Origin: Scyliorhinus canicula
Taxonomy: Eukaryota
Assembly (NCBI RefSeq): GCF_902713615.1
Contig: NC_052157.1
Span: forward strand, 58,416,325-58,480,324
Direction: 5' to 3'
Length of the DNA: 64,000 nt
Shown here: positions 756-50,578 of the stretch, piece by piece
Position numbering within the stretch: position 1 is the stretch's first letter
Layout: the number at the start of each line of letters is the position of its first letter
Position numbers and translations under genes: made by a program
Notes under the pieces: generated by a model
Databases searched by the model: none
The model's input: the letters and a program-made list of their open reading frames with translations, nothing else
What the model was told of the DNA's origin: nothing

Positions 756-1533
756 CAGAAACATGAAGCCGTGTTGCAGGATAATAGTTATGGCCGAGAC
801 CACTGTCAAATTCTATCCTGAAAAAATAAGGTCCCGTATCTTCCCGCCTGATGTTGTTTATTATCAGGGAACAGTCTCCGTCTTTCAGGTCTCCAGACAG
901 CCGGGTCCGATGGCGGAACCGTGGCAATTCGTGTTTGTGATCCTTGGAGTGGAAGGCTAGGGGCGCCCAGGGATTCACTTCCTCAATATTAAACCAGACT
1001 ATTCTTCGCGGTTGGTTTTTCAGACACAATGGATAACTGCAATGACTTGGAATCTTCACACACGAACCTTCCTGCGCTGTTACCTCTCGTAGAGTTTGGC
1101 CTTTCCACCAGAAACGGCCCTAGGGTTGCTGGCACCCCGGGCAAGCTGAACTTCGGCGCCCTTCGGTTGGGGGGGGGGGCTCCGTTCACCGAGGGAAGGG
1201 GGGGGGCGCCGGAGTGACCTGGTACATGATCGGGACCCACCGATCGGCGGGCCGGTCTTTCTGTCGGCAGGCCTCCTTTCTTCCACCGGCGTGCCTGGAT
1301 CCATCCGCCATGTTTGTGCGGGGCGGCCTGGGGGAGGGCGGCCACCGCGCATGCGCTGGTTGGTACCGGCCCAACTGCGCATGCGCGGGACCCGAGTCTT
1401 TTACGCGGCGCCGGGTCTCTGACGCCGGTCACACACTCCTTGATGGCGCCCCCTAGCACATGGCGCCCCGGGCGACTGCCCGAGTTGCCGGTACCTTGAG
1501 CCGGCCCTGCTTTCCACTCTTGTGACAGTTCAG
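756..1533 (-). pseudogene. Siglec-like V-set Ig exon (V2), interrupted by a hAT MITE
   Basis: AG acceptor at 1535-1534 and GTAAGT donor at 755-750, phase 1/1. Removing 1109-1509 plus one TSD copy gives a 369-nt open exon: ELSQEWKGQTLREVTAQEGSCVKIPSHCSYP...W...RTRLSGDLKDGDCSLIINNIRREDTGPYFFRIEF...TRLHVS. The net 409-nt insertion shifts the frame. Confidence 0.88.
1109..1509. mobile_element. Non-autonomous hAT-type MITE, 401 bp
   Basis: 8-bp TSD CTTTCCAC at 1101-1108 and 1510-1517. Imperfect TIRs CAGAAACGGCCCTAGG / CAGGGCCGGCTCAAGG (11/16). GC-rich interior. Confidence 0.88.
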
Positions 1534-1589
1534 CTGGAGAAAAAGATATCAATATTTACCACTGGGTGGCTTGTAGGCCCACGAGACTC

Positions 1590-1990
1590 AAAATGTATCT
1601 GAATTAGGGAGAAAGTCAATACTGAGGAAGACTGTGATCGCTGACTTTGGCAGGAAAAATAAAAAAGCTGAATATTATTTATTCTTTTATTTTAAAAGAA
1701 GAGGGACTACAGAATGTGGTGTAAAGGGATCTGAGTGTCTTTGTACATGAATTACAAAATGTTAGTATTCGTCTAGAGCAAGTGATTGGGAAGGTAAATG
1801 GAATGTAGGCCTTTATTGAAAGGGGGATGGAGTATAAAAGCAGGGAAATCTTGCTGCACCTGCACAGGGTGTTGGTGAGTTAACATTGAGAGTACTGAGT
1901 ACAGTTCTGGTCTGCATGCTTAAGGAGGGATATTCTTCCATCAGAAACTGTGAATGTTCACTATGCTGATTTCTGTGGCTGGTGGGTTAT
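1590..1990 (+). mobile_element. CR1 LINE RT fragment (degenerate)
   Basis: Sequence resembles the CR1 RT C-terminal region seen elsewhere in the window (compare 44400-44720). No open frame. Confidence 0.7.
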
Positions 1991-2289
1991 CTTATGGGGA
2001 AAGGTTGAACTCATTGGAGTACTGGCCTGGAGCAGGTGGATCTGTCCATGGCAGCATCAGTAGACGTGATCGCTGTATAGTCCTTGTGGAGACAATGTCC
2101 CGTCTTCGCATTGAGGATACCCTCCATTGTGTTGTGTGACACGACCACCGTGCTAAATCGGATAGACTTCGAACAGATCTGGCAATTCAAGACTGGGCAT
2201 CCATGAAGTGCTGTGGGCCATCAGCAGCAGCAGAATTGTACTCAACCACAATCTGCAACCTCATGGCCCAGCATACTTCTACACTTTCT

Positions 2290-5262
2290 GGGTCCGTATC
2301 CCTCTATTCTCATCCTATTCATGTATTTGTCAAGATGCCCCTTAAATGTCACTATCGTCCCTGCTTCCACCACCTCCTCCAGCAGCGAGTTTTAGGCACC
2401 CACTACCCTCTGTGTAAAAAAACTTGCCTCGTACATCTCCTCTAAACCTTGCCCCTTGCACCTTAAACCTATGCCCCCTAGTAATTGACCCCTCTACCCT
2501 GGGGAAAAGCCTCTGACTATCCACTCTGTCTATGCCCCTCATAATTTTGTAGACATCTATCAGGTCACCCCTCAACTTCCGTCGTTCCAGTGAGAACAAA
2601 CCGAGTTTATTCAACCGCACCTCAAAGCTAATACCCTCCATACCAGGCAACATCCTGGTAAATCTCTTCTGCACCCTCTCTAAAGCCTCCACATCCTTCT
2701 GGTAGTGTGGCGACCAGAATTGAACACTATACTCCAAGTGTGGCCTAACTAAGGTTCGATACAACTGCAACATGACTTGCCAATTTTTATACTCAATTTC
2801 CCGGCCAATGAAGGCAAGCATGCCGTATGCCTTCTTCACTACCTTCTCCACCTGTGTTGCCCCTTTCAGTGACCTGTGGACTTGTACACCTAGATCTCTC
2901 TGACTTTCAATACTCTTGAGGGTTCTACCATTCACTGTATATTCCCTACCTACATTAGACCTTCCAAAATGCATTACCTCACATTTGTCTGGCTTAAACT
3001 CCATCTGCCATCTCTCCGCCCAAGTCTCCAAACAATCTAAATCCTGCTGTATCCTCTGACAGTCCTCATCGCCATCCGCAATTCCACCAATCTTTGTGTC
3101 GTCTGCAAACTTACTAATCAGACCAGTTAAATTTTCCTCCAAATCATTTATATATACTACGAACAGCAAAGGTCCCAGCACTGATCCCTGCAGAACACCA
3201 CTAGTCACAGCCCTCCAATTAGAAAAGCACCCTTCCATTGCTACTCTCTGCCTTCTATGACCTAGCCAGTTCTGTATCCACCTTGCCAGCTCACCCCGAT
3301 CCCTTGTGACTTCACCTTTTGTACTAGTCTATCATGAGGGACCTTGTCAAAGGCCTTACTGAAGTCCATATAGACAACATCCACTGCCCTACCTGCATCA
3401 GTCATCTTTGTGACCTCTTCGAAAAACTCTATCAAGTTCGTGATACACAGCCTCCCCTTCACAAAACCATGCTGCCTCTCACTAATACGTCCATTTGCTT
3501 CCAAATGAGAGTAGATCCTGTCTCGAAGAATTTTCTCCAGTAATTTCCCTACCACTGACGTAAGGCTCACCGACCTGTAGTTCCCTGGATTATCCTTGCT
3601 ACCCTTCTTAAACAAAGGAACAACATTGGCTATTCTCCAGTCATCCAGGACATCACCTGAAGACAGTGAGGATCCAAACATTTCTGTCAAGGCCTCAGCA
3701 ATTTCCTCTCTAGCCTCCTTCAGTATTCTGGGGTAGATCCCATCAGGCCCTGGGGACTTATCTCCCTTAATATTTTTCAAGACGCCCAACACCTCATCTT
3801 TCTGGATCTCAATGTGACCCAGGCTATCTATACACCCTTCTCCAGACTCAACATTCACCAATTCCTTCTCTTTGGTGAATACTGATGCAATGTATTCATT
3901 TAGTACCTCGCCCATTTCATCTGGCTCCCCACGTAAATTCCCTTGCCTATCCTTCAGTGGGCCAACCCTTTCCCTGGCTACCCTCTTGCTTTTTATGTAT
4001 GTGTAAAAAGCCTTGGGATTTTCCTTAACCCTATTTTCCAATGACTTTCCGTGACCCCTTCTAGCCCTCCTGACTCCTTGCTTAAGTTCCGTCCTACGTT
4101 CCTTATATTCCACACAGGCTTCGTCTGTTCCCAGCCACTAGCCCTGACAATTGGCTCCTTTTTCTTTTTGACGAGGCCTACAATATCTCGCGTTATCCAA
4201 GGTTCGCGAAATTTGCCGTATTTATCCTTCTTCCTCACAGGAATATGCTGGTCCTGAATTCCTTTCAACTGACATTTGAAAGCCTCCCATATGTCAGATG
4301 TTGATTTACCCTCAAACATCCACCCCCAGTCTAGGTTCTTCAGTTCCCGCCTAATATTGTTATAATTAGCCTTACCCCAATTTAGCACATTCACCCAAGG
4401 ACCACTCTTATCCTTGTCCAGCAGCACTTTAAAACTTACTGAATTGTGGTCACTGTTTCCGAAATGCTCCCTTACTGAAACTTCTATCACCTGGCCGGGC
4501 TCATTCCCCAGTACCAGGTCCAGTACAGCCCCTTCCCTAGTTGGACTGTCTCCATATTGTTTAAGAAGCCCACCTGGATGCTCCTTACGAACTTTGCCCC
4601 GTCTAAGCCCCTAGCACTAAGTGAGTCCCAGTCAATATTGGGGAAGTTGAAATCTCCCGTCACAACAGCCCTGTTGTTTTTATTCGTTTCCAAAATCTGT
4701 CTACCTATCTGCTCCTCTATCTCCCACTGGCTGTTGGGAGGCCTGTAGTAAACCCCCAACATTGTGACTGCACCATTCCCATTCCTGATCTCTACCCATA
4801 TTGCCTCGCATCCCTCTGAGGTGTCCTCCCACAGTACAGCTGTGATGCTCTCCCTAACCAGTAATGCAACTCCTCCACCCCTTTTACCTCCCACTCTGTC
4901 TCGCTTGAAACATCTAAATCCTGAAACGATTAGCTGCCGATCCTGTCCTTCCCTCAACCAGGTCTCTGTAATGGCAACAACATCATAGTTCCAAGTACTA
5001 ATCCAAGCTCTAAGTCCATCTGCCTTACCTGTTATACTTCTTGCATTAAAACATATGCACTTCAGGCCACCAGTCCCACTGTTTTTGGCAACATCTCCCT
5101 GTCTTCTCTTCCTCAGAGCCATAATGGCCCTATTCCCTAGTTCTCCCTCAATGTTTTCACCTTCTGACCTATTGCTCCGGTACCCACCCCCCTGCCATAC
5201 TAGTTTAAACCCTCCTGTGTGACACTAGCAAATCTCGTGGCCAGGATACTTATGCCTCTCCA
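2290..5262 (-). mobile_element. CR1 LINE, near-complete ORF2 (APE endonuclease + RT) with stops/frameshifts
   Basis: ORFs 4487-5122 (CICFNARSI..VVAITETWL..GGGVALLV..GDFNFPNIDW), 3262-4113 (KSPGPDGIYPRILKE..QHGFVKG..VDVVYMDFSKAFDKVPH) and 2342-3238 (GVLQGSVLGPLLF..KFADDTK). Confidence 0.95.
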
Positions 5263-7204
5263 GTTGAATCTCGCTGGCCAGGGAGAACAGAAGTTGCAAA
5301 TGGGAAGGACACTTCATTAGAATTTACGAGGACATCAGGGCAGACCTCGCCAGGAGACGGGCCGAATTTAATAGAGCGAAAGCAGCTCATCACAAGAGCA
5401 GAGTGCGTTTTGGTATGCTGTACCCAGCGAAACTCTGGGTCACATACCAAAAAAGAGAATACTTCTTCACAACCCCCGCCGAAGCAAATCAGTTTATTGA
5501 GGAACCTGGGCTGGAAAAACAACAGCGAGGGTAGAAATACGGGGCCCCAGGTAAGGGGCACCCCACCCCTATCAGGGCGAGCGCACCCTGATCAAAGAGA
5601 AAACTGCTACCTGAGGGATCACCACAGGTGGGAGACCAGGCCCCAGCATGAGAGAACGAGAGCAGCGGAGAAGGGAGAGCAAGCGAAGAGAGCGCAGAGT
5701 AGGATGGGGGAAGAGCAGACAGAAAAAACGCAGAGGCTGGGCAAAGGAGAAGCGAGACAGAAATTCCCGAGAGGGGGGTCACCATACTAGCAAGAAAGTT
5801 AACGCTGGGGACATGCAGCAAAGCAGGGCCGCAGCGTGCCCCCAACAGGGGGGAAGGCGCCAGGCAGGGACGGGGGGGGGGACCACTCAACAGAGGCGGG
5901 AGAACAAACGCGGATAGGAGCAGGGGAAAGAGGGACAAAGGAGGGATATACGGGAGGGGGGGGAGAAAAGGGGGGAAAGATAGGGACCGGGTAGGAGGGG
6001 GCACAGGAAGGGAAGGACCCGGGGGGTGGGGAACGCAGGGACAGTGGGACAAACAAGGTTAGAAAAGGAACAACAATAGGGCTACAAAGTGCCACAACAG
6101 AGGGATCGGAACAAGGAATCGCCGCAAGCATCCACCCAGTACGGTCGCTGGGCGAAGGGAGGCCCCAGAGCGCAGGGGACTACCTGCGTGGCAGTCGCAC
6201 AGCGGGCGGCCATGTCGGGTGCCCCCTGGGCGAAGGGAAACCCCGGAGCGCAGGGACCCGACCGCATGGAGAGAGCAGCGACAACGGCCATCCTGGACGG
6301 CCCCCAAACAAAGGGGAACCCCGGAGGGCAGGGGCGCGTCCACCAGGTAAATATGGTTGACCCCGCAGGAGCGAGGGGACAGAAGCCCCCCAACAGGATA
6401 GTCACCTGGAACGTAAGGGGACTCAACGGCCCAGTGAAAAGATCCAGAGTCCTCACCCAATTGTTCCGGGACCTGTCCGTGGCCAATAAACAAGCAGAAG
6501 AGCAGCCAGGTAGCCAAGAAACGGGAAAGTAGCCAAAGTATGAGAGGGAGAGATAGACCGGGAGAGGGGGGGAGGGACAGCTAAATCTAAGAGGAAGGAA
6601 AGGTGAACCACAGCGCTAGGGGGGGGGGGGCGGGGCGGAGGTCAGAAGCGGGGAGAGGGGGGGGCAGAGGGGAGAGACAGGGAACAATAGGGGAGAGCCA
6701 GGGAAGGGGAGGGGGGAGGCAGGAAAACGTTAACAAACTTGGCATCCACAGGAACAGAGAAAATGGGGAAGACGGGAGAGCTGCAGAAGCGGAAGTGCGC
6801 ACGAGACGACAACGTCAGTGAAATCCGTTCGGAAGAAGCAAGGATGCACGAACGGATGCCTACATATGTGTGTAAATAACTTTGCCAAGGGTACAGAGCT
6901 GCCGCTGTTGAGCGGAGGCACAATACCGTCTGCTGACTTCGCGGGGAAAATTAACACTTCAGCAGCAGCAGCGACCCATGGGGGGGGGGGGGGGGGGGCA
7001 TTTCATTTCCTTTTTGTAAGGGGCGCATGCTCTATCCTGTTTTGAATTTACTGTTCATTTGCTAAACTGTTTATCGTTTAGAGGGTTAAGTTGTCCTGTT
7101 CTGTTGGCATGTTGCCCTTCTTTCTTTGTATTATTTTCCTTTTTGGAGGGTTTTGTAAACTTATTGAAAACTCTCAATAAATACATTTTTAAAAAATAAA
7201 TAAA
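5263..7204 (+). mobile_element. L1/Tx1-type LINE remnant, internally deleted
   Basis: ORF1 C-terminus (..RRRAEFNRAK..FGMLYPAKLWVTY..) at about 5290-5510. Endonuclease start NRIVTWNVRGLNGPVKRSRV at about 6395-6460. AATAAA and A-rich tail at about 7170-7204. Confidence 0.8.
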
Positions 7205-9050: not shown

Positions 9051-9054
9051 TTAA

Positions 9055-9172
9055 ATAAATGATTTTAAAAAGTTTAGAAGAATGATAGGTGATCTTATTG
9101 AACCATGTAATATTCTGCGGGGGTTTGACAGGATAGATACTGAGAGGATGTTGCTCATTGTGAGAATCCAAA

Positions 9173-9212
<40 letters not shown>

Positions 9213-11110: not shown

Positions 11111-11782
11111 TTAATGCCATTCTCTGGCAAGAGAATTTTTTTGGAAGACTGCTTAAAGAGAGAGAGAGAGATTCTTTGCATAAAAAGGTTGCAGATCCCT
11201 ATCTGTCAGACTAATGCTGAATCTGACAGTCTACAAAAGCTCGATCTTAGTGACAGAGAATCCATGAGTTGTCAGCAGGCGGAGCTCTTTGAGGAGAATG
11301 TTTTCTCTGCGGACATCAGGAGGAGAGTGAACTCACAGGAGAGAGAGCACGATGAGTTAAGGTGGAGACTGAGTGAGTGGAACAGTGAAGATATCCCAGT
11401 GGGAACGTTGTTATCGTCTCTGGGAGGACAATAGAGAAGGGGATTTTGAAAGGGAGGTGAGAGGGTGGGACGCAGTGAGATGTTCAAAAGAGGAGAAAGT
11501 GACAGACGAGTCGGTGGGGGTGGGGGGAGGTCAGGCCAAGATGTGATTTGGACATAAACACCACACAAGGTCCATTCCCCTTAGATAGAGCTATGTTAAA
11601 ACTATGATGTTGATTCAATCAAACACAGTAAACTAATGGATCTGGAAGTAGAAATAGAAAATCATTAAAAACAGTGATGCTGGTTAACATGGCCACAAAT
11701 CCAGAAAATCAAACATTGGGATGTGTTACTACCCATTGAGTGTTGGATGTGAATTGTTATGTAATTATAACACAGCACTTAC

Positions 11783-12148
11783 CAGAAATGTGAAGCTGGG
11801 TTCCAGGATAATAGTTGTAGCTATTTTGGCTGTCAAATACTATTCTGAAAAAATAAGGTCCTGCATCTTCCAATTTGATGTTGTTTATAATCAGGGAACA
11901 GTCTCCGTTTTCCAGGTCTCCAGACAGCCGGGTCCGATTGCGGAACTGCAGTGTCTCGTGATTGTGATCCTTGGAGTGAAAGACGATAGATGATGGTGAC
12001 TGTTTCTTGCTTTTGTACCAGATTCCGACTCGCAGATGGTTTGCCAAATGTGATGGGTGTGTGTAATGACATGCAATCTGTACACACAAACCTTCCTGCG
12101 CTGTCACCTCTCTTGGAGTGACATAATTCCACTCTTGAGACAGTCCAA
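11783..12148 (-). CDS. Siglec-like (CD33/MAG/CD22-type) N-terminal V-set Ig domain exon (V1), intact
   Basis: AG at 12150-12149, GTAAGT at 11782-11777, 366 nt, phase 1/1, open. Encodes GLSQEW..EGLCVQIACHY..GIWY..RTRLSGDLENGDCSLIINNIKLEDAGPYFFRIVF..GTQLHIS, with the Siglec-typical extra Cys (GLCV), B/F-type Cys pattern and the F-strand Arg in YFFR. Confidence 0.9.
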
Positions 12149-14653: not shown

Positions 14654-14864
14654 GTGTCCACAGTCATGTGACCCCATTTTGGCCATATTGGGATAATTTA
14701 GGAATCTCCCAGGAATCCTTTTGAAGGAAGACAGACCATCATTCCGGAATCTTCATGACCTGATATTTTTGCACAACTTGATCACTCACACATGGGCATA
14801 GATCAGACATGAAAATCGCAAGAGAGACAGCCTATTGGCCTGGTTTGCCCAATAACATTGAGTC

Positions 14865-16020: not shown

Positions 16021-17040
16021 TGTTACGACATCCTGAGCAGTGCACAGTAAATTCCATGCCCCCTTGACCTGGAGACTCAACACTATTGAATTAACCAATA
16101 ATTCTTCGAAAAATACCCGCAATCTTTGGCCCTTGGCTGCCCAATAATTACAGTCACCAGGTTTGTAAATTTAAACACAATTACTTTTTATTTATAATAA
16201 GAACTATAATGAAATATTCAGAAAATACAACTGGTTAACTATTTTCGAATTCCTAATCCCTAATCCGCCAATTTAACTTGCCCCCACCCTCAACATGCGC
16301 ACTCACACACACACGGCAGACAGACACAGGGCGGAGAAGAGGGGTGTAAAAATAATAATGAAAGGGATAAAAGTATTTTTTCAGATGGTTGCCTTATAGC
16401 ACATCTTTCTTAAATTTAGTCTTTCAGTTTGAGGTGTTCACTGTGGAGTCATTCATTCAGATTATCTGTAGGTTCAGAAATAAAGCAGCTCAGAGAATNN
16501 NNNNNNNNNNNNNNNNNNNNNNNNNNNNNNNNNNNNNNNNNNNNNNNNNNNNNNNNNNNNNNNNNNNNNNNNNNNNNNNNNNNNNNNNNNNNNNNNNNNN
16601 NNNNNNNNNNNNNNNNNNNNNNNNNNNNNNNNNNNNNNNNNNNNNNNNNNNNNNNNNNNNNNNNNNNNNNATTCACTGCTTCCTTGAACGTCCAGGGCCA
16701 ACTCTGCTTTTCTTTGGTCTCTGGAATTCATCCCGCTCAGGCAGGATCCAATCACCACCTGTTACCGGGTAGAATACTACCATTTCGGCAATTCACTGGC
16801 CACCAGCCAACCAATCGAAGCAAGTCACACCCCATCTCGGGTGCCACTAAGTCTGAGTTCTGTTACTCGAAAACTAGCACTATATGCTGTGTTGCAACTT
16901 TTAGAACTCATAAATCTCTCTGCTGTTTCACTTAAAAAAAACATGGCCATTAAGCATCCATATATCAAAATGATAATGGCACAAAAAGAGTGGGGAAATG
17001 AGGGAATCAGCAGGAAAGACCCTTATGTTGGCAGAGCACA
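16021..17040 (-). mobile_element. Solo-LTR-like element spanning an assembly gap
   Basis: Begins tgttacgaca.., the reverse complement of the LTR terminus at 14653/30273. Right boundary approximate. Confidence 0.55.
16499..16670. other. Assembly gap (172 N)
   Basis: Run of N. Confidence 1.
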
Positions 17041-18489: not shown

Positions 18490-18529
18490 CTTGGAGAAGT
18501 GTCAGAAAAAAGTAAGATTTCCCGATCAT
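18490..18529 (-). CDS. Signal-peptide (leader) exon of Siglec-like gene A; full exon 18490-18571
   Basis: Polypyrimidine tract and AG at 18573-18572, ATG at 18529, MIGKSYFFLTLLQ+G, GT donor at 18489-18488. Phase 1 joins V1 in frame (..LLQVGLSQEW..). Paralogous to 52790-52871. Confidence 0.88.
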
Positions 18530-18829
18530 TGTCCACTCCCAGATATTTCATCAGCTTCTCACTCTCAAGTTCTGGAAGAGAAAGGAGTTAATGAGACCTC
18601 ACCTCTTGTCCGACAGCTCTCGAGAGATCAGAGATGCTTTTAGACAATGACTTCACAGACTAATTTGATTCAGTGTGGGATGATAGGTGCTCTGCAGAGA
18701 GTTACAATGCTTTAGGAAAGAATTATCTCACTCAACTCAGAAGCAGTAAGTCCGGATATCGAGTTCCCAATCCAGAGCCTCGACTCCCATTTGCCTGCTC
18801 AACACACCCTGGAAACGTAACGGAGACAG

Positions 18830-21420
18830 CACTGCACTGTCAGAGGTCCAATAGTGAGGTGAACAAGACTGTTGGTGGGTCAGTACTGAGAGAGTGCTGC
18901 ACTGTCAGAGGGTCAGCACTGAGGGAGCACTGCACTGTCAGAGGGTCAGCACTGAGGGAGCACTGCACTGTCAGAGGGTCAGTACTGAGGGAGTGCTGCA
19001 CTGTCAGAGGGTCAGCACTGAGGGAGCACTGCACTGTCAGAGGGTCAGTACAGAGGGAGTGCTGCACTGTCAGAGGGTGAGTACTGAGGGAGCGCTGCAC
19101 TGTCAGAGGGTCAGCGCTGAGGGAGCACTGCACTGTCAGAGAGTCAGTACTGAGGAACTGCTGCACTGTCAGAGGGTCAGTACTGAGGGAGTGCTGCACA
19201 ATTGGAGGGTCAGTACTGAGGGAGTGCTGCACTGTCAGAGGGTCAGCACTGAGGCAGCAGTGCACTGTCAGAGGGTCATTACTGAGGGAGTGCTGCACTG
19301 TCATAGGGTCAGCACTGAGGCAGCACTGCACTGTCAGAGAGTCAGCACTGAGGGAGTGCTGCACTGTCAGAGGGTCAGCACTGAGGGACTGCTGCACTGT
19401 CAGAGGGTCAGCACTGAGGGAGCACTGCACTGTCAGAGGGTCAGTACAGAGGGAGTGCTGCACTGTCAGAGGGTGAGTACTGAGGGAGCGCTGCACTGTC
19501 AGAGGGTCAGCGCTGAGGGAGCACTGCACTGTCAGAGAGTCAGTACTGAGGAACTGCTGCACTGTCAGAGGGTCAGTACTGAGGGAGTGCTGCACAATTG
19601 GAGGGTCAGTACTGAGGGAGTGCTGCACTGTCAGAGGGTCAGCACTGAGGCAGCAGTGCACTGTCAGAGGGTCATTACTGAGGGAGTGCTGCACTGTCAT
19701 AGGGTCAGCACTGAGGCAGCACTGCACTGTCAGAGAGTCAGCACTGAGGGAGTGCTGCACTGTCAGAGGGTCAGCACTGAGGGACTGCTGCACTGTCGAG
19801 GGTCAGTGCTGAGGGAGCACTGCACTGTCAGAGGGTCAGTACTGAGGGAAAGCTGCACAATTGGAGGGTCAGTACTGAGGGAGTGCTGCACCGTCAGAGG
19901 GTCAGTACTGAGGCAGCACTGCACTGTCAGAGAGTCAGTACTGAGGGAGGGCTGCACTGTCAGAGGGTCAGTACTGAGGGAGTGCTGCACTGTCAGAGGG
20001 TCAGCACTGAGGGAGCACTGCACTGTCAGAGGGTCAGTACAGAGGGAGTGCTGCACTGTCAGAGGGTGAGTACTGAGGGAGCGCTGCACTGTCAGAGGGT
20101 CAGCGCTGAGGGAGCACTGCACTGTCAGAGAGTCAGTACTGAGGAACTGCTGCACTGTCAGAGGGTCAGTACTGAGGGAGTGCTGCACAATTGGAGGGTC
20201 AGTACTGAGGGAGTGCTGCACTGTCAGAGGGTCAGCACTGAGGCAGCAGTGCACTGTCAGAGGGTCATTACTGAGGGAGTGCTGCACTGTCATAGGGTCA
20301 GCACTGAGGCAGCACTGCACTGTCAGAGAGTCAGCACTGAGGGAGTGCTGCACTGTCAGAGGGTCAGCACTGAGGGACTGCTGCACTGTCGAGGGTCAGT
20401 GCTGAGGGAGCACTGCACTGTCAGAGGGTCAGTACTGAGGGAAAGCTGCACAATTGGAGGGTCAGTACTGAGGGAGTGCTGCACCGTCAGAGGGTCAGTA
20501 CTGAGGCAGCACTGCACTGTCAGAGAGTCAGTACTGAGGGAGGGCTGCACTGTCAGAGGGTCAGTACTGAGGGAGTGCTGCACTGTCAGAGGGTCAGTAC
20601 TGAGGGAGTGCTGTACTGTCAGAGGGTCAGTACTGAGGGAGTGCTGCACTGTCAGAGGGTCAGTACTGAGGGAGTGCTGCATTGTCAGCGGGTCAGTGCT
20701 GAGGGATTGCTGCACTATCAGAGGGTCAGTACTGAGGGAGTGCTGCACTGTCAGAGGGTCAGTACTGAGGGAGCGCTGCACTGTCAGAGGATCAGTGCTG
20801 AGGGAGTGCTGCACTGTCAGAGAGTCAGTACTGAGGGAGTGCTGCACTGTCAGAGAGTCAGTACTGAGGGAGCGCTGCACTGTCGGAGGGTCAGTACTGA
20901 GGGAGTGCTGCACTGTCAGAGGGTCAGTACTGAGGGAGTGCTGCGCTGTCAGAGGGTCAGTACTGAGGGAGTGCTGCACTGTCAGAGGGTCAGTACTGAG
21001 GGAGTGCTGCACTGTCAGAGGGTCAGTACTGAGGGAATGCTGCACTATCAGAGGGTCAGTACTGAGGGAGAGCTGCACTGTCAGAGGGTCAGTACTGAGG
21101 GAATGCTGCACTATCAGAGGGTCAGTACTGAGGGAGGGCTGCACTGTCAGAGGGTCAGTACTGAGGGAGAGCTGCACTGTCAGAGGGTCAGTACTGAGGG
21201 AATGCTGCACTATCAGAGGGTCAGTACTGAGGGAGGGCTGCACTGTCAGAGGGTCAGTACTGAGGGAGGGCTGCACTGTCGGAGGGTCAGTACTGAGGGA
21301 GTGCTGCACTGTCAGAGGGTCAGTACTGAGGGAGTGCTGCATTGTCAGCGGGTCAGTGCTGAGGGAGTGCTGCAATGACGGAGGGCCAATACTTAGGGGC
21401 TGCTGCACTGACGGAGGGTC
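18830..21420. repeat. 33-bp minisatellite (GAGGGTCAGTACTGAGGGAGTGCTGCACTGTCA)n, about 78 units
   Basis: Direct reading. The 11-aa periodic pseudo-ORFs (RVSTEGVLHCQ) confirm the 33-nt period. Confidence 0.97.
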
Positions 21421-21944
21421 AGTAATGAGTAACTTCAGTGGAGTTTTAACATTAAGGAGAGAGTGTGGAAATATCTCTTCATGGAGTTGGTTTTGAAAAA
21501 TATTTACAGGATGTAGGTATCACTGGACCAGCATTAATTACCCACCCCGAGTTGCCCTTGAGAAATTGTTTGCGGCTGCTTTCTTGTACTGCTTCAGTCC
21601 CAGTGTAGGTGCATCCACCGTGCTGTTTGAGAGGCAGTTCCATGATTTTGACCCAGTGACAGTGAAGGAGTGACTGGTATATTTCCAAATCATGACGCTG
21701 AGTGACTTGAAGGGGAATCTCCAGCTGGTGTGGTTCCCAGGTATCTGCTGCTCTTGTCCTAATAGGCGGCAATGGTCCTGGGTTTGGAAGGTGCTGCCTC
21801 AGGAACCTTGGTGAGTTACTGCAGTGCATCTTGTAGATGATGCACACGGCTGCCACTGTTCGTCAGTGATGGAGAGAGTGAATGTTTGTGAATGGGGTGG
21901 CAAACAAGCGGGGCTGCTTTGTCCTGGATTGTGTTGAGCTTCTT

Positions 21945-30273: not shown

Positions 30274-30939
30274 CAGGGCAACACTCTCCCGACTGGATAC
30301 AATTGTGCCACCACCTCTGCTGGGTCTCTCCTGCTGGTGGCACAGGACATACCCAGGGATGGTGATGGCGGTTTCTAGGATATTATCGATAATCTGATTC
30401 CGTGAGTATGTTTACATCAGGCTGTTGCTTGACTAGCCTGTGAGGCATCTCTCCCAATTTTGACACCAGCCCCAGATGACAGTAGGAAGGGCTTTGGAGG
30501 GTTGACATGGCTGGGTTTGCCATTGTCATTTTTGGTGCCCCAGTCAATGCCAGGTGCACCACCTGGTTTCATTTCTTTTTGTTCCATTTGTAGCGGTTGA
30601 ATGGGTGTAAATTCCAGGAATGCGGCAGGAGGGAAGGGCTGAGAGGAGTGGCTTGGAATTGCTTTCGGAAGGAGCAATCACAGAGATGATTGGTTGAATA
30701 GCTTCCGAAATTGCAGTAACCACTTTCGTTCCGAGAATTTTTGTCAATCTCAGCCCCATCAGAATGTTTCTGGTAAGATGTAACGGTGGAAGAAAGAATT
30801 TGAGGAACAAACACTGTTTCTGAAAGTTTATATATTTAGTTCATCAAATTGAGAAGTTTGCATTTCATTTCATTTTTCTTTCTCATTCCCACTTCCTAAT
30901 TTAGACAATGGTCAGGATTGCAGTAATTTGCACAGCACT

Positions 30940-31260
30940 CGGAGTGTTAGTACTGAGGGAATGTTGCACTGTTGGAGGGTCAGTTATGAGGGAGATCAGC
31001 ACTGTCAGAGGGTCAGCACTGGGGGAAATCTGCTCTGTTATAGGGTCATTCCTGAGGGAGGTCAGTTCTGTCGGAGGATTGGTACAGAAGATGATCTGCA
31101 CTTTCGAAGGGTCCATACCGAGGGAAATCTGCATTGTCGGAGGGTCAGTACTGCAGGAGATTTGCACTGTTGAAGGGTCAGTACTGAGAGAGTGTTGGAC
31201 TGTCGGAGGCTCAGTACTGAGGGAGATCTGCACTGTGCGAGGATCAGTACTGGGAAATTA
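30940..31260. repeat. Degenerate copy of the 33-bp minisatellite (about 10 units)
   Basis: Periodic gagggtcagtactgaggga..ctgcactgt motifs. Confidence 0.85.
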
Positions 31261-31575
31261 CTACAATTGACAGTGTCAATACTCAGTAGTGTTGCACTGT
31301 GCATAGAGTGATAAGACTTTTAGGAAGAAAAAAAATGAAGAACGTGCATTTCTCTAGCACCTTTCACCACATCAGGACATCCCAAAGTTCATGTCTCTTC
31401 CTCGGCTCTTGAACTAGAAAGACGTTCTGTACGACAGACTTGAGCCTCAGACCCAGATATCAATACTAAGTGGAAACCGTTCAAAGGCATCAATCATTGG
31501 AACCTGTCTTTATAAATTTGCAACATCAACAAAGGACAATGTTGGTTGTAGAATTCCAATCATTATGTTACTTAC

Positions 31576-31716
31576 CCAGCAGCTATCTGACTGCTCGCTT
31601 GTGGATTAATTTACGACACGCTCTTCCTGGTCTGAATGAGCTCTTCCTGTTCCGCTCCCTCTGTGTATTTAATTGGAAAGTGTTAATGCGTGACTGTGAG
31701 TCAAAATGAGGAAGTT
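31576..31716 (-). promoter_or_regulatory. Putative promoter and non-coding exon 1 of Siglec-like gene A
   Basis: GTAAGT donor at 31575-31570, AT-rich TATA-like box at about 31665-31672, ETS/PU.1-type AAAATGAGGAAGT at 31703-31715. Homologous to 50432-50578 and (inverted) 52095-52235. Confidence 0.65.
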
Positions 31717-31856
31717 ATCACAGTGATGAAACAGCATTGTTCTCTCAGGAAGAAAATCCCACAGACTAATAACCTTTGAAATAAAAAATCCTCCTCACCT
31801 CTGTCTTACATGGGAGACCTGACATTTTGAATTTGTGCCCCCTTGTTCTAGATTCT

Positions 31857-32379: not shown

Positions 32380-35140
32380 ACTGCCTGCAATGCAACATAG
32401 AGGAATAAGAGCGATAATATATGCAGCTGGGGTCAAGGCATTGGGGGCAACGGCTTTAGCTATGGATCTGCATGTCCAAGGCCTGGGGTATTCTGTGCAG
32501 GTGGGGTCCCAGGCACAGGACAGGGTTGCTGCCTCACAGGCAGCCAAGTGCCAGGGCCACCTGGTCGTTGCAGTGGCAATACTGAGCGTGGCCCAGTCAT
32601 AGCAGACCATGGCTGAGAACATTGGCGACATTGGCCAGGTACTGGCCGACATGGTGCAGACACATAGTGAGGTGACCCAGTCCCAGAGGGAGATGGTGCA
32701 ATCACTAGCTGATGTGGCGCAGTCCCAGACGGAGATGGTCCACTCTCTGTGCTCCATGGTCACAAGAATGCAGACCCTGGTCCAAACCTGGGCTGGCCTC
32801 CTTGCCATGCAGTGCGAGTTGTCAGGGGAGCCTCAGGGGATAGCTCCACTCGCACCTAGTCCCATGGAGTAGCCCAGGGGTCATGGGGCCCCCCGATGGA
32901 GGAGGAGGTGATGGGACCCGTTGCTGTGACTCCCGCAGGGGAGGTGCTGGAACACTGCAGCACTTCAGACTCCCCCTCCATCCTGTCTCTGGTGTATCTG
33001 GTGGGCAGCGGGCAGAGCAGGTTGGCACCACGACACCCAGGATGCCCGAGCAGCATCGGGGCCCATTCAGGCCCGGTCTCCCCAGAACACGGCCGCCAAG
33101 GGGGAACACAGGGCGGGAATCACAGCAGACTGCCTCCACTCCTACTGTACATTCTGGGGATTCACCAAGACGTAATGTTAGGGCCCGTAAGGCCAGGAGG
33201 CTTGACACCAATTAAGTTGGCACGGGTGCAGGGCACAGTTTAGCTGTATGGGCTGAGGCACTAACCTGTAAATTCCTTGTCACATTAAACACCCGTTCAC
33301 ACTGTTATAACCTGCCTTGGTGTTCTGTCAGAATGGTGTGGAGGCGGGCCGGTCTGGGCGGCCAGAGAGGAGATGCAGTGGTGGGGGAATGGGTGGACGT
33401 TGTGGGTTGCCTGGTCTCTCCACCTTTCCCACCCCCCTCTCCCCCACTCTCCACCGTCACCCCAGGGGTCCGATGGCACCGTGTGATGGAATGGCCAGCT
33501 CGCATGCAGGGACCACCCAGGTGGATGATGGAAAGTGTTACCGTGGGCAGGAGCTTATCGCAGATAATGGACCCTCCATCTAATGGACCAGATCCAGTGT
33601 TACTGCCAACCCAAGGCCTGCATCTGTAGTGTGGAGTGGTGTATCATGGAGGGGGTTTCAGGCGGGGGGAGGGTGTGGGGATGGGATGCGGTGCCCAGGT
33701 GTACGTGCTCCTGTCCAGTTTTCCCACCCCCGCTCCCCCACAGTCGGTGAACCTGGAGGCGATCAGAGCGCCCCATGTGCATTGGCCCAGGCCCACACAG
33801 AATGCCTGCTTCGGCCCCATGTCCTGCCCATCCTCCCCCTCCCCTGCATGCTCCTTGTTGGACGAGGCCTGGCGTTAATCCTCCTCCTCCAGTATGTCGC
33901 CCCTCTGCTGCGCGATGTTATGGAGGGCGCAGCAAGCCACCGCGGTGGGCGACCCTCTCAGCATCATACCACATCTTCAGGAGCCCGAAGCATCGCTCGA
34001 TCATGCCCTGGTTGCAGCTTGGGCGTCATTGTAGCAGGTCTTGCCGTGGGTCTGTGGCCTACGGATAGGAGTCATCAGCCATGACTGCAGTGGATAACCT
34101 GTCACACAGGAGCCAAACACCCCAACCGGGGGGTACATCTTAAACATATCAGGACTGGTTGAGTGTGCCAGGATGAAGGCATCGGGCACACTTCCTGGGT
34201 ATCGTGCGCAGACGTTTATGATGCGCAGCTGATGGTCACACACCAGCTGCACGTTCATCGAGTGGAACCCTTATCGGTTTATGTTGAGTGGTCTGTCATC
34301 TGCTGGTGCTTGTCGGGCGACATGCATCCCATCGATCACCCCATGGATCTGGGGCATGATAGCAATGGCGATGAACCCTGTTGCCCGGGCACCCTAGTGG
34401 GCTCGGTCCACATTGAAGTGGATGTATTGTGCCGAATGGGAAAATAGGGCCTCCGTGACGGCACGGACACACCTGTGCACCGAGATCTGTGAGATCCCGG
34501 ACAGCTGCCCACTCGGCGCCTGGAAGGACCCAGTGCCGTAAATGTTCTGGGCCACTGGCACCTTGATGGCCACCGGGAGTGGGTGTCCTCCACCATACCC
34601 CCACAGTTCCAGGTGTGCCATGATCGTGCAGATATGTCGCACTGTCTCCCGGCTCAGCCAGAATCTTTAACGGCATGCCCGGTCCGGCAGGTCCTCAAAT
34701 GACAGGCGCTGCCTGTACGCACGAGGTCTCATGCGGTGCCTCTGTGGCACCTGCTCCTACTCGGCCTGTTGGGCGACCAACACTACATCCTGGTTGGCTG
34801 CCTCTTGTTCCTCTGGGTCATGCTCCACTGCTGCCTGGTCCGCTGCTGCAGATTCCTCCTCCTCCCCGAGCAGCTCCATCTCGTACAGCCGCAGGACATC
34901 CCCCAGGGCTGCGGTTACCAGCAGGAAGGCCACCATTGTTGGTTGAATTCCAATATCCATTGGCTGCAGAGGGTGAAAGGCCGAAATGTTAGCATGGTCC
35001 TACCCTGTGCTCAACCAGGTCCGATGGGCTACATGGTGGTCCCGGCTGGCACCGTGGGCTCTGCTCCCGTGTTTTCCCTCCATCTTCGCACTTCCGGTCT
35101 CGTCATTGCCCGGCAACATGAGGACTCTAGCCCTGGCACC
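32380..35140. mobile_element. Degenerate PIF/Harbinger transposon (transposase on minus, second gene C-terminal part on plus)
   Basis: NVQLVCDHQLRIINVCARYPGSVPDAFIL..GYPLQSWLMTPIRRP (DDE_Tnp_4/HARBI1-like) at 34001-34258. GISQISVHRCVRAVTEALF at about 34430-34500. Heptad-rich ORF at 32609-32872. Confidence 0.85.
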
Positions 35141-44061: not shown

Positions 44062-44297
44062 TGTGGTAGTCGCTACTGATGTATTATACTGTATATATGG
44101 GTTTTACGGTAAGCCCCTGTACTACAGGCATGGGGGTAGATCCCTGCCTGTTGGCTCCGCCCAGTAGGTGGAGTATAAATGTGTGTGCTCTCCGAACAGC
44201 AGCCATTTCGTCAGCTGCTGTAGGAGGCCGCACATCTCCATGTAATAAAGCCTTGATAACATTCTACTCTCGTCTCGTCATAATTGACAGTGCATCA
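44062..44297 (+). mobile_element. Gypsy solo LTR, 236 bp, inserted in the CR1 RT DDTK codons
   Basis: TG..CA ends, 5-bp TSD GATAC (44057-44061, 44298-44302), TATAAAT and AATAAA. Removal restores KDDTKIG. Related to the LTRs at 55868 and 60777. Confidence 0.85.
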
Positions 44298-44854
44298 GAT
44301 ACTAAAATAGGTGAGAAAGCAGGCAGTGAAGAGGAGATAAAAACTTTTACAGACGGATATAGATAGGCTAGGAGATTGGGACAAACTTTGACAGATGAAG
44401 TTTAATGTGGATAAGTGTGAAGTTGTCCATTTTGGCAAAAAAAATAGAAAGGCAAGTTATTATCTCAATGGAAAGCAGATTCAAAATGCATCTGGGCAGA
44501 GGGATCTGGGTGTCTTTGTTCATGAATCACAGAAAGCCGGTATGCAGGTACAGCATGTAATTAAAAAGGCAAATGGAATGTACGCATTTATTGCAAAAGT
44601 ACTGGAGTATAAAAGTAGAGAAGTGTTGTAATTGTACAGGGTGTTGGTGAGACCACATCTGGAGGATTGTGTCCAGTTTTGGTTTCCTTATTTGATAAAG
44701 GATGTGGTACCATTTTAGTCAGTTCAGAGGAGGTTCACCAGACTGGTTCCGGGATGAGGAGAGATTAAACATTTTGGGCTTATACCTGCTGGAGTTTAGG
44801 AGGATAAGAGGGGATCTGACTGAGATGTATCAAATCAGATCAACAGGCAAATTT

Positions 44855-45175
44855 GGGGCCTCACGGTAGCATGGTGGTTAGCATCAATGCTTCACAGCTC
44901 CAGGGTCCCAGGTTCGATTCCCGGCTGGGTCACTGTCTGTGTGGAGTCTGCACGTCCTCCCTGTGTGTGCGTGGGTTTCCTCCGGGTGCTCCGGTTTCCT
45001 CCCACAGTCCAAAGATGTGCGGGTTAGGTGGATTGGCCATGCTAAATTGCCCGTAGTGTAAGGTTAATGGGGGTTGGGTTACGGGTATACGGGTTACGTG
45101 GGTTTAAAGTAGGGTGATCATTGCTCGGCACAACATCGAGGGCCGAAGGGCCTGTTCTGTGCTGTACTGTTCTAA
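44855..45175 (+). mobile_element. HE1/V-SINE-like SINE, young
   Basis: Nearly identical to 15238-15574. Confidence 0.9.
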
Positions 45176-45469
45176 ATGCTTAATGGGATTGATGAAGTAA
45201 ACATAGACCAAATGTTCCCCCTTTGTGGGGAAATCTAGAAAGAGAGTTCACGGATATAGGCTGAGGAGCAGTAGATTTTGAACTGAGATGAGGAGAAAGT
45301 ACTTCTTGCAGAGGATGGTGAAATTGTGGAACTCCCTGCCCATAGTGTGATTGAATCTGAGTCATTTAATGTTTTCAGGAAAGAGATCAGTCATGATCTG
45401 ATTAAATGGCAGAGCAGGCTTGAAGGCCTGAATTGCCTACTTCTGCTCCTAATTCCTGTGCTGCTATGT

Positions 45470-48285
45470 GCCATGCCACCTGGGACACCCAAGCAGCTGC
45501 CGGGCCCATCCAGGCGTGGTCATCTTAGAAGATGACCGCCAAAGGGGATCCAGGTAGCAGGGCAGGAATTGCAGCAGATCACCTCCACTCCCTGATGTAA
45601 CGCCTGGGGATCTACCTATGTGTAGCATTAAGGCCCATAAGGCCAGAAAGGTACACACTAGTTAAGATGGCATGGGTGCAGCACATAGGACAGTGTTCAG
45701 TGCTAGGGCACAACGCTCTGTATATAAGTTCACTTCTTCGCATTAAACACCTGCTCACAACATTGCAATCTTCCTCGGTGCTCTGTCAGAGGATGTGAGG
45801 GATGGGATGTGCTGGCGGCAGAAGGGGCGGAGGAGGGGGATGGGCTTGGCGCAGGGTCCCCAGTTGAGCCAGCGCTCACTGCTCTGGTGTTCAGCCCCAA
45901 TTCCCCCCCCCCCCCCCGCGCAAAAATTAAATGGGAGCTTGCGATCAAATGGCTAGTTCGCATTCTAGGATCACCTAGGTGGACGGTGAAACATGCTACC
46001 ATGAACAGGTATTAGACATTGTCGAAAGGTGCAGAGCATTGCAGACCGGGATGCCATCATCCTCCATCCCATGGACCATTACTGCCAACCCAGGGTCCAC
46101 ACCCAGTAGTACGGCAGGTACATATCACAGAGGGGGTTTGGAGGGGTTGGTCAGCAGGGGGTGAGGATTGGGATGGGATGCCCATGCCCCCCTGATCAGG
46201 CCCGCTAGTCAGTGAACCTGGAGGCAACTGGAGCATCCCATGCACGCAGCCCAGTTGCACACGTTGTGCTGCCTCCAGTGCTGCCTGGACCTGCCATTCC
46301 TCCTCCTATAGCATGTCACCCCTCTGATGCGATGTTGTGGAGGATGTAGCAGATCACCACAATGTGGGAGACCCTCCTAGTGCTCTATGGAGGGCCCCTC
46401 CACAGCAGTCCAGACACCTGAACCACATCTTCAGGATGCTGAAGCGCCGCTCATCCATGCATGGGCGTCGTTGTAGCGGGATCTCCATGTCTGTCTGTGG
46501 TCTCCGGATGCATGTCATCAGCCACAGCCACAGTGGATAACTCCTGTCGCCCAGGAGTCAACCTCCCCAGCTGGTGGTGCACCTTGATGAGGCCAGGAAC
46601 CATTGAGTGTGCCATGGTGAAGGCGTGGTGCACACTGCCAGGGTATCGGGCACAGACGTGCATGATGCGCAGCTCATGGTCACACACCAGCTGTACATTC
46701 ATCAAATGGAACCCCTTTGGGTTTGTGAACACTGGTCTGTCATGGACGGTGCTTTTAGGCCCATCAATCACTCCCTTGATCTTGGGCATCTCGGCGATGA
46801 CAGCAAACAAGGGCATCGTGGTGGGCTGGGTCCACATTGAATTTCATGTATTGTGCGACTGGGCCTCCTGTGCACCGAGCTCTGTAAGATCCCTGACAGG
46901 TCCCCACTCAGCACTTGGAAAGACCCCGTGCCGTAAAGATTCAGGGCGAACGTCACCTTGATGGCCAATGTGAGAGCGTGTCCTCCCCATACCCCTGCGG
47001 TGCCAGGTGTGCCATGATCTGGCAGATATGTCGCACCATCTCCCTGCTCAGCCGAAGTCTTCAACAGCATGCCCCGTCCAGCAGGTCCACGAATGACAGC
47101 CACTGCTGGTAGACATGAGGCCTCATGCGGTGCCTCCTTCCAACCTCCTCCTCTCAGGCCTGTCAAGCGCCGGGTCTCCATCCTCACTGGCTGGCTCCTG
47201 TTCCTCTGGGGCTGGCTCCGCCGTTGCACGGTCTTCCCAGAGGAGCTTGCACAGCCTCAGTGCATCCCCCAGGGCTGTGGCGACTAGGATGAAGGGCACC
47301 GATCCTGTTGAATTCCAAATTCCATTGTCTGCAGTTGGTGTCTGCAGCTGTGGCTGATGGAGACTGACATGGAGACCCACTGCAACGACGCCCATGTACC
47401 CCAACGTACGCCAGTGCCCGGTCAAATCCACCAGGCTACACAGTGGCCCCAGTCTGCACGACAGACCCTGCCCCACATGTGTGTCCTCCACCCATCCACA
47501 CCCGGCCATTCCCCGGCACACTGCCCTAGCCACATCAGTGCTCAGCACCATGGGGGCCACTAGCCCTTGCGCCAGCTTCTGTTGCCAGGAGTGCCGTTGG
47601 CTGCTCCGCTGGTAGGTAGTAGCCAGTCCGGGGGGAGGACAAAGTTGGAGGAGTAGGGGGTGCTGGCTGGAGTGCAAGGGATGGTGGGTGGGGGCACCCA
47701 TACGGCCGGAGTCACTCTGCACAACCAGTCACCACGGTGGGCGGTCAGCGGGGTGCACAGCAAGATGGCTGCTTTGCCATCCCAGGCCTGTGGGGTGTCA
47801 CCCTGACCCACAACCCATCCCCTGGTCACACCCTGTCACCCCCTGCTGCCCCCCAGGCCTGGCAGAGGCCCCCCCCCACAGGCTTCTTAGAGAACCACCT
47901 CCCAGCCAGCCCTGTCAGTGGCAGGACCGGCAGCCCACGGCCGCACCTCTCCATGTCCTAACTCCTCTCTCTCCCTCATCAGCCACGGCACCTCTTTCCC
48001 GATTTGTAAAACCACAAGGGAACCCCCCATTGGTAATTCCAGCAGGTGGAGCCAGCGAATCGCCGAGGCCACGGAGAATACCGGGTCAGACCCGCTCATG
48101 ACATGCGAACAGCATTTACTGTACGTACGGAGTAGAACGTATCAATGCTGCTGTCGAGGTACTGGAGCATGGCACTCTGACCTGTGCCTGGCACCCGCCA
48201 TGATTTTGGCGTCATGACCAATTCTCCGCCCAATCGCATTTAACGATTTTAGCAACGTCCAGCCGGAAACCCCGCCTTTGATTTC
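45470..48285 (-). mobile_element. Degenerate PIF/Harbinger transposon
   Basis: KIKGVIDGPKST..FTNPKGFHLMNVQLVCDHELRIMHVCARYPGSVHHAF (ORF 46451-46837). Subterminal motifs at about 48220-48285. Confidence 0.85.
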
Positions 48286-48296
48286 TCTCTTTGACA

Positions 48297-49975
48297 TCAA
48301 CCAACAGTGTTCACAAAGGAGAGGGGTAATGTTGTTGAGGAGGATAGTGCGATACAGGCTGGTAGGCTGGAGGAGGTAGATATTTTGAAGGAAGATGTGT
48401 TAGAAATTTTGAGAAGCCTGAGGATAGATAAGTCCCCTGGGCCTGATGGGATATATCCTCGGATTCTTTGGGAGGTGAGTGATGAGATTGCAGAGCCTTT
48501 GGCTTTGATCTTTATGTCCTCACAGTCTACAGAAATAGTGCGAAAAGACTGGAGAGAAGCGAATGTTGTCCCCTTGTTCAAGAAAGGGAATAGGTATAAC
48601 CCTGGGAATTATAGGTCGGTTAGTCTCACTTCGGTCGTAGGTAAATTATTGGAAAGGGTCCTGAGGGATAGGATTTATGATCATTTGGAAAGATACAGCT
48701 TAATCCAGGATAGTCAGCATGGATTTGTGAGGGGTAAGTCTTGCCTCACAAGTATGATGGTATTCTTTGAGGAGGTAACTAAGTACATAGATGAAGGTAG
48801 AGAAGTTGATGTTGTATATATGGATTTTAGTAAGGCGTTTGATAAGGTGCCCCATGGTCGGCTCATACATAAAGTAAGGAGGCATGGCATAGAGGGAAAT
48901 TTGGCTGATTGGATCAGTTACTGGCTGTCACATAGAAGACAGAGGGTGATGGTAGATGGTAAATTTTCATCCTGGAGCCCAGTCACCAGTGGTGTACCAC
49001 AGGGATCAATGCTGGGTCCTCTGCTATTTGTGATTTTTATCAATGACTTGGATGATGGAGTTGAAGGTCGGGTTAGTAAATTTGCTGATGACACCAAGAT
49101 TGGTGGAGTAGTGGATAATGTGGAGGGCTGTTGTAGGCTGCAAAGAGACATTGATAGGATGCAGAGCTGGACTGAAAAGTGGCAGATAGAGTTTAACCCT
49201 GATAAGTGTGAGATGATTCATTTTGGTAGGACAAATTTGAATGCGGATTACAGGGTTAACGGCAGGGTTCTGAAGAATGTGGAGGAGCAGAGAGATCTCG
49301 GAGTTCATGTCCATAGATCGCTGAAGGTTGCCACCCAAGTGGACAGAGCCATGAAGAAAGCCTATCGTGTGTTCGTGTTTATTAACAGGGAGATTGAGTT
49401 TAAGAGCCGTGAGGTTATGCTGCAACTGTACAAGACCTTGGTTAGACCACATTTGGAGTATTGTGTGCATTTCTGATCACCTCATTATAGGAAGGATGTG
49501 GAAGCATTGGAAAGGATGCAAAGGAGATTTACCAGGATGCTGCCTGAATTGGAGGGTAGGTCTTATGAGGAAAGGTTGTGGGAGCTATGGCTTTTCTCAT
49601 TGGAGTGAAGGAGGATGAGAGGTGACTTACTTGAGGTGGATAAGATGATGACAGGGATAGATAGAGAGGACGTTCAGCGACTTTTTCCTTGGGTGGATAT
49701 AGCTGTTACAAGGGGGCATAACTATAAGGTTCATGGTGGAAGATATAGGATGGCTGTCAGAGGTAGGTTCTTTACTCAGGGAGTGGTTGGGGCGTGGAAC
49801 GCACTCCCAGCTATGGTAGTGGAGTCGGACACTTTAGGAACTTTCAAGCGGTTATTGGATAGGCACATGGAGTGCACTAGAATGATTGGGAGTACGTTGA
49901 TTTGATCTTAGTTTCAGGCTAGTTCGGCACAACATTGTGGGCCGAAGGGCCTTCCTGTGCTGTATATGTTCTATA
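48297..49975 (+). mobile_element. 5'-truncated CR1 LINE with a long open RT
   Basis: ORF 48307-49476 (KSPGPDGIYPRIL..DFSKAFDKVPH..GVPQGSMLGPLLF..KFADDTK). 3' tail shared with the SINEs (ggccgaagggcc..tgttcta). Confidence 0.95.
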
Positions 49976-50084
49976 TGTTAACTCTCATTTTGACTCAGAC
50001 TGACACATTAGCCCTTTCAAGTTTAAATACACTTCCATTTCTGTGGCATCTTTCACCTGCCCAGGATGTACCAAAGTTGTAAAT

Positions 50085-50237
50085 GGGATTCTCCGCCCCG
50101 CCATGCCACAGTTCTGCCTCACCCAGCCAGCGGCATTCTCCGTTACGCTGGCCGGTCAATGGGGTTTCCCATTGTAGTGCAGCCCCACGCCGTCGGGAAC
50201 CCCCCGGCCTGTCTGCAAAACGGAGCATTCTGCCCTT
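50085..50237. mobile_element. Short Harbinger-type MITE
   Basis: gggattctcc..ggagcattctgccc ends. Same family as 52433-52621. Confidence 0.7.
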
Positions 50238-50431
50238 CATCTCTATATCTCACTTGTCCCTTGAACTGGAAAGATGTTCAGTATGACCGTTTTGAGCCTC
50301 ACTCCCAGATCTCAATAATAAGTAGAAATCTTTCAATGACGTATATTATTGGAATCGGTTTTCTCAAGTCACAACATCAACAAAGGACAACATTGGTCGT
50401 GGAAATTAATTTCGGTTGTTACCTTACTTAC

Positions 50432-50578
50432 AAAGAGTAAGGACCTGTACAACTGCTCACATGAGACTGAAACCGCGGAAACACTCTGTTTAGGGTGAAT
50501 TGTATCTTCCTGTATTGTTAATTCTGTGTATTTAGGTAAAAGGGTTGATATGTCACTGTGAATCAAAATGAGGAAGTT
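50432..50578 (-). promoter_or_regulatory. Third copy (C) of the Siglec-like promoter/non-coding exon 1 module
   Basis: GTAAGT donor at 50431-50426 and GTCACTGTGAATCAAAATGAGGAAGTT at 50552-50578. Colinear homology to 31350-31716 extends over about 50030-50580. Confidence 0.62.

Follow-up and report, generated by a model that had tools for sequence, protein, structure and literature searches.

We show that the minus strand of a 64,000-nt stretch of Scyliorhinus canicula DNA (hereafter the window, on which all coordinates are based) harbors the 5′ half of a Siglec gene that has been annotated before and whose product is listed in RefSeq as XP_038669858.1 (sialic acid-binding Ig-like lectin 13, "Siglec 13", 415 aa). 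One of the two V-type exons on this strand, V1, matches this protein at 100%, and when minus-strand positions 18529-18490 are joined to 12148-11783, the translation is identical to residues 1-135 of the protein. An initial annotation of the same DNA had described a locus with two promoters, one leader and two interchangeable V exons, and had proposed that it could be (a) a two-V receptor, (b) a gene choosing among V cassettes and alternative promoters, or (c) interleaved relics of duplicated genes. We consider it highly probable that the locus is instead a single-V gene starting at exon 1A, that the second V exon, V2, is a former internal V exon broken by a transposon, and that a further promoter copy, C, and the degenerate fragment next to it remain from past duplication.

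The RefSeq model leaves out the disrupted V2, the orphan promoter copies and the transposons of the introns. Its coding sequence spans 26,597 bp on the 165-Mb chromosome of GCA_902713615.2, which places the end of the gene about 8 kb past the left edge of the window. After V1, the model passes straight to DFTDNPRIVPAEIIAGKRVDINC... (DFTDNPRIVP...), the first C2 domain, which is absent from the window; V1 is therefore joined directly to C2, and V2 is skipped. The downstream part of the protein, encoded by exons outside the window, contains a C2-set_2 match, a second immunoglobulin domain, an uncharged transmembrane (TM) segment and a tail in which the motifs LPYATI and MEYAEI occur. As modelled, this combination of a C2-set domain, an uncharged TM segment and such a tail resembles the mammalian CD33-related inhibitory Siglecs (CD33, Siglec-5, -7 and -10), which V1 matches with E values of 1e-9 to 1e-13 and with the essential arginine aligned. 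Most likely, the gene encodes an inhibitory Siglec of the CD33-related type. Identity to the mammalian CD33-related Siglecs is only ~30%, and the RefSeq numbers are automatic names that do not establish orthology to any numbered mammalian Siglec.

To what extent the window contains other parts of Siglec genes was addressed by tblastn with 10 full-length relatives, including their C2 domains, TM segments and tails (E up to 10), and by nhmmer profiles. Across the whole window, these searches recovered two leaders, two V exons, three promoter copies and one degenerate promoter copy, with no C2, TM or tail exons and no further remnants of V, leader, C2, TM or tail sequences. On the minus strand, a single leader was recovered. 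The statements of the initial annotation that V1 and V2 are not separated by a C2 exon, and that no leader lies either between these two exons or between promoter copies C and A, were thus borne out. An Rfam scan yielded nothing at the gathering threshold.

The leader exon (18490-18571, minus strand) lies where the initial annotation had placed it; it follows a pyrimidine-rich AG acceptor, encodes MIGKSYFFLTLLQ from its ATG at 18529 and ends at a phase-1 donor, GTAATA. V1 (11783-12148, minus strand), also placed correctly as a phase-1/1 V exon, is intact, measures 366 nt and encodes residues 14-135 of XP_038669858.1. Siglecs have an essential arginine on strand F that binds the carboxylate of sialic acid, and their V domains have three characteristic cysteines, namely a B-E intrasheet pair and an extra cysteine linking to the C2 domain. 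Judged by its sequence, V1 is a member of this family: it matches the Pfam V-set (E=1.2e-16) and Ig_CD22 (E=4.6e-11) families as well as the solved V domains of sialoadhesin, MAG, Siglec-10, Siglec-5, CD33, Siglec-7 and Siglec-8 (E 1e-13 to 1e-9), and it retains all three cysteines (C21, C26 and C83). The essential arginine, in the V1 motif YFFRIVF, aligns with that of sialoadhesin, YNFRFEI (phmmer against 1url/1od7), at a column occupied by arginine in 94% of the V domains of the family.

An assembly gap (16499-16670), the only run of N in the window, lies inside the 6.3-kb intron between the leader and V1. Since splicing across the gap restores the RefSeq coding sequence, the missing sequence is not needed for coding and the frame is unaffected. 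The flanks of the gap showed no match to Siglec modules by tblastn or nhmmer, and the gap itself may hide an exon. Long open reading frames (ORFs) that span the gap, or the 33-bp satellite described below, were rejected as artefacts. The leader exon also contains an extra upstream ATG at 18551 on the minus strand, out of frame with the main ATG; its equivalent is in frame in the paralogue XP_038670868 (MKYLEGTMIGKSYF) and is a CTG in the leader of the plus-strand gene.

V2 (756-1533, minus strand) had been taken for a single frame-neutral exon. It is indeed a V-like exon with good splice sites, but it is divided into two pieces by an insertion with a target-site duplication. The 5′ piece (1510-1533, 24 nt) starts with A-ELSQEWK, and its last bases are the target site GTGGAAAG. 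The 3′ piece (756-1100, 345 nt), whose reading frame is open and which is followed after 756 by a GTAAGT donor, matches the Pfam V-set (1.1e-9) and Ig_CD22 (7e-8) families. Between them, the interruption (1101-1509) comprises a GC-rich sequence of 401 bp with CAG termini (1509-1109) followed by the second 8-bp copy of the target site (1108-1101), so that the plus strand has CTTTCCAC as a direct repeat with a spacing of 409 nt (1101-1108 and 1510-1517). Without the insert and one copy of the target site, V2 measures 369 nt and both pieces align colinearly with V1. As it stands, the exon measures 778 nt (778 mod 3 = 1), and the 409 additional bases cause a frame shift and a premature stop, which is reached after 181 codons when V2 is read uninterrupted from the phase of the V1 donor. 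V2 is therefore broken, and it is skipped in the RefSeq model. A whole-library phmmer search with V1 returned elasmobranch proteins under RefSeq Siglec-like names; V2 was found in none of the ~250 proteins fetched, the best match being 82% identical and from Cetorhinus.

Apart from the insertion, V2 keeps a frame that is otherwise open, consensus acceptor and donor sites, and the essential arginine (YFFRIEF). It retains the first and third cysteines; the second, conserved in 99% of the family, is replaced by serine, and a new cysteine appears two residues later. In addition, a 98%-conserved tyrosine has become cysteine and a 96%-conserved glycine has become isoleucine. The insert is a probable non-autonomous hAT-like element (a miniature inverted-repeat transposable element, or MITE), a class suggested by the 8-bp duplication and the CAG at both ends. 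Its terminal repeat is short and imperfect (~8/12 positions), its subterminal inverted repeat extends over 13 nt with 85% complementarity, and its relatives within the window amount to one partial copy (54802-54997, 71% identity). The two copies of the target site are identical, and the insertion therefore looks comparatively recent.

The duplication that gave rise to V1 and V2 looks, by comparison, old. The two exons are 75% identical in nucleotide sequence and 58% identical in amino-acid sequence, with a nonsynonymous divergence (dN) of 0.26, a synonymous divergence (dS) of 0.49 and a dN/dS of 0.54, a ratio that points clearly neither to positive selection nor to drift as a pseudogene. The A-E-L-S-Q-E-W start of V2 resembles that of the internal V exons of multi-V relatives in Scyliorhinus, Mustelus and Cetorhinus, which begin with AEPS, AELS or TELS, whereas first V exons in the comparison set always begin with (V/A)GL(S/A/T) and never have glutamate at that position. 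As both exons are phase 1/1 and neither a leader nor a C2 exon separates them, a transcript predating the insertion would encode a two-V receptor, and the gene was probably such a receptor before it lost its second V domain. The proposal of a two-V receptor thus fits the probable ancestral state, with its tandem V exons, AE(L/P)S start and splice sites, but not the present gene, in which V2 is frameshifted by the 409-nt interruption and RefSeq omits it by joining V1 to C2. As a separate observation, the introns that follow V2 and V1 open with 61 nt (695-755 and 11722-11782 on the minus strand) in which identity reaches 92%; this segment could be a conserved splicing element or a product of local gene conversion.

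Upstream of the leader, the minus strand contains two copies of a promoter/exon 1 unit. Copy A (31576-31716, within a homologous block at 31380-31760) has AACTTCCTC and TGACTCA and a GTAAGT donor after 31576; copy C (50432-50578, block 50231-50619) keeps the ETS-like core, and its GTAAGT donor comes directly after 50432. The blocks, of ~390 bp each, have in common TTCCTCATTTTGA..CACAGT, a second AGGAAGA block and the GTAAGTAA donor, and the 21-nt promoter core is present at three places in the window, compared with a chance expectation of 0.03. Copies A and C of the initial annotation are thus confirmed, and they are homologous. The count of two promoters and one leader was nevertheless incomplete, as the plus strand adds a third copy, B, with a leader of its own, and a degenerate fourth core (49977-50032; nhmmer E=1.4e-5) in which the TTCC motif is mutated.

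Exon 1A is likely the first exon of the minus-strand gene. The first intron contains a 33-bp minisatellite (18877-21429; 77 copies, 88% matches) next to the leader, and a diverged patch of the same satellite (30939-31252) lies just downstream of exon 1A, with ~9.5 kb of transposon-derived sequence between the patches. Because the same satellite borders exon 1A and the leader alike, and because promoter and leader lie close together (553 bp apart) in the plus-strand gene, we read exon 1A and the leader as one ancestral unit, the first intron of which would have been inflated by satellite expansion and transposons. The satellite also yields long spurious ORFs on both strands. For copy C, the searches of the window found no downstream leader of its own, and it is probably an orphan duplicate that, like the adjoining degenerate fragment, was left over from local duplication. 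The proposal of duplication relics thus suits these two elements. The choice among V cassettes and promoters, on the other hand, is unsupported at this locus, given that V2 is broken, that only one transcript variant is on record and that C has no leader of its own.

Taken together, these data suggest the following scheme. Transcription would most likely start at exon 1A (~31.6 kb), which would be spliced to the leader across a 13-kb intron with the minisatellite and transposons, and the leader would then be spliced to V1. From V1, a splice of more than 11.8 kb would bypass V2 and reach the C2, TM and tail exons outside the window, the last of these carrying the immunoreceptor tyrosine-based inhibitory motif (ITIM). 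V2 would once have been the second, internal V exon, until the 401-bp hAT-like element entered 24 nt into it. Its inclusion would now lead to a frame shift and an early stop, so that the receptor would be encoded by V2-skipping transcripts only; since the exons are phase 1/1, skipping V2 stays in frame. Copy C and the degenerate fragment, which adjoin promoter B of the divergent plus-strand gene, would stem from local duplication.

Several points weigh against this scheme. The predicted skipping of V2 and use of the promoters rest on a computational RefSeq (Gnomon) model. Copy C may remain active, as its donor is perfect and its core motifs are kept. The otherwise open frame and intact splice sites of V2 imply that its loss would be recent, and the insertion could be polymorphic or bypassed. 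Finally, a maximum-likelihood tree of 137 V domains (119 columns), which is largely unresolved, places V2 weakly (85/84) with the sole V domains of other catshark genes and gives V1 no placement. The nearest neighbors of V2 in this tree, the sole V domains of the Scyliorhinus genes P0008 and P0201, together with the old divergence of V1 and V2 and the rapid duplication of the family, would be compatible with an origin of V2 in a separate gene further downstream, where it was the first or only V exon before the promoter and leader of that gene were lost; in that case the present gene would be a fusion of two tandem genes. We regard such a fusion as unlikely: no trace of a leader or promoter was found between V1 and V2 by tblastn or nhmmer, the AELS start of V2 is that of internal V exons and not of any first V in the set, and the tree has little resolution; moreover, either origin would lead to a two-V transcript before the insertion.

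Exons 1A and 1C could also be alternative promoters of a single gene that share the leader acceptor at 18571, and the position of C on the same strand upstream of A, its ETS-like core, second GGAA block and consensus GTAAGT donor speak for such an arrangement. Yet 32 kb separate C from the leader, A lies within this distance, and C sits in a cluster of duplicated promoter pieces (among them the degenerate copy at 200 bp and, on the opposite strand, B at 1.5 kb) that looks like duplication debris. XP_038669858.1 has one accession and hence one transcript variant on record, in contrast to some paralogues with several accessions per protein, so that there is no hint of an alternative first exon; we find this use of C quite unlikely. 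It is very improbable, in turn, that V2 is still used, either because the insertion is a polymorphism or a feature of the assembled haplotype or because it is mostly removed as a cryptic intron. With a GT at 1494-1493 as donor and an AG at 1102-1101 as acceptor, the remaining exon would measure 384 nt, stay in frame and encode 5 extra residues, and V2 has an otherwise open frame over 123 codons, consensus splice sites and the essential arginine, but the cryptic donor (AAG/GTACCG) and the purine-rich acceptor tract are weak, V2 is left out of the RefSeq model, and the highly conserved cysteine and glycine have been lost. We therefore favor a single-V gene that starts at exon 1A and skips a disabled V2.

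The plus strand contains the beginning of a second, divergent Siglec gene, to which promoter/exon 1 copy B belongs (52054-52235, with a homology block to 52438). Its leader exon (52790-52871) has an ATG at 52832 and encodes MIGKSYFLLSLLQ. A segment at 63831-63991 on the plus strand matches the intron just upstream of V1, and the V exon of this gene is therefore expected ~90 bp past the end of the window. Promoters B and C are arranged head to head, 1.5 kb apart. A GC-rich element resembling a short interspersed nuclear element (SINE) or a MITE, GGGATTCTCC...GGGGTTTCCCATTGTAG, occurs both directly downstream of C (50060-50230) and in the first intron of the plus-strand gene (52420-52640). The intron between the leader and the expected V exon of this gene contains a Gypsy-type long terminal repeat (LTR) retrotransposon (55862-61016, plus strand), with gag-pol ORFs between LTRs that are 96% identical (55862-56107 and 60769-61016) and a 15-bp repeat (60040-60558) that encodes (PAPTP)n. 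Two Harbinger/PIF-like transposon copies, ~70% identical and with DDE-type ORFs, are located between A and C (33028-34975 and 45471-47340). Many ORFs of long interspersed nuclear elements (LINEs), Gypsy elements and Harbinger-like elements are found in the window, which has 50% GC and an observed/expected CpG ratio of 0.46.

Tandem V domains have been described in primate Siglec-12, a CD33-related Siglec whose N terminus bears two V-set domains in tandem (PMC6288428). The catshark gene and human Siglec-XII are alike in that each has lost part of its binding capacity, although by different routes: human Siglec-XII through mutation of the arginine and null alleles, the catshark gene through a transposon in the second V exon, which is skipped, with the arginine of the first V domain kept. 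The two are not orthologous, as the elasmobranch tandem-V genes arose in an expansion of their own lineage. Closer parallels are the multi-V models XP_038670868-74 of S. canicula (3-4 V), XP_078093144 of Mustelus asterias, XP_078389734 of Cetorhinus maximus and XP_059815055 of Hypanus sabinus (4 V), which resemble the present gene in their leader (MIGKSYF...), in the family of their V domains, in the compatible phases of their tandem V exons and in the AEPS/AELS starts of internal V exons. They differ in that all their V exons are intact and included, whereas the present gene uses V1 only.

Such architectures are not confined to these examples. By scoring directly adjacent V domains in RefSeq models with a hidden Markov model built from elasmobranch V domains, we found tandem-V Siglec models in at least 10 elasmobranch species, with two V domains in Mustelus, Carcharodon, Cetorhinus, Chiloscyllium, Hemiscyllium, Rhincodon and S. 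canicula, three in S. canicula, S. torazame and Mustelus, and four in S. canicula, Hypanus and Mobula. In the S. canicula paralogue XP_038670868-74 (P0156, P0151 and P0001 in our set), isoforms X1-X3, which are computational models, have a common leader and tail but contain 4, 3 and 3 V exons, respectively, drawn from a set of six. No paper on multi-V Siglecs of sharks was found in the literature we searched, where primate Siglec-12 is the only Siglec described as having two V domains.

Our analysis corrects a supposed system of V cassettes and two promoters to an annotated single-V inhibitory Siglec with ordinary features of decay, and provides an example of a lectin receptor that loses a binding domain to a mobile element and stays in frame by exon skipping. 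More interesting than the locus itself is the wider lead that tandem-V Siglecs, undescribed in the papers searched, are widespread in sharks and rays, with alternative use of V exons annotated in at least one paralogue. We tentatively suggest, with the isoforms of XP_038670868-74 as a hint, that the CD33-like Siglec genes of elasmobranchs might possess arrays of V exons in phase 1/1 from which variable combinations are included, giving rise to receptors that differ in the number and kind of their glycan-binding domains; the conserved 61-nt intron segment could then serve in the control of splicing. If so, the locus described here would be a member of this group of genes in which one cassette has recently been lost to a transposon.

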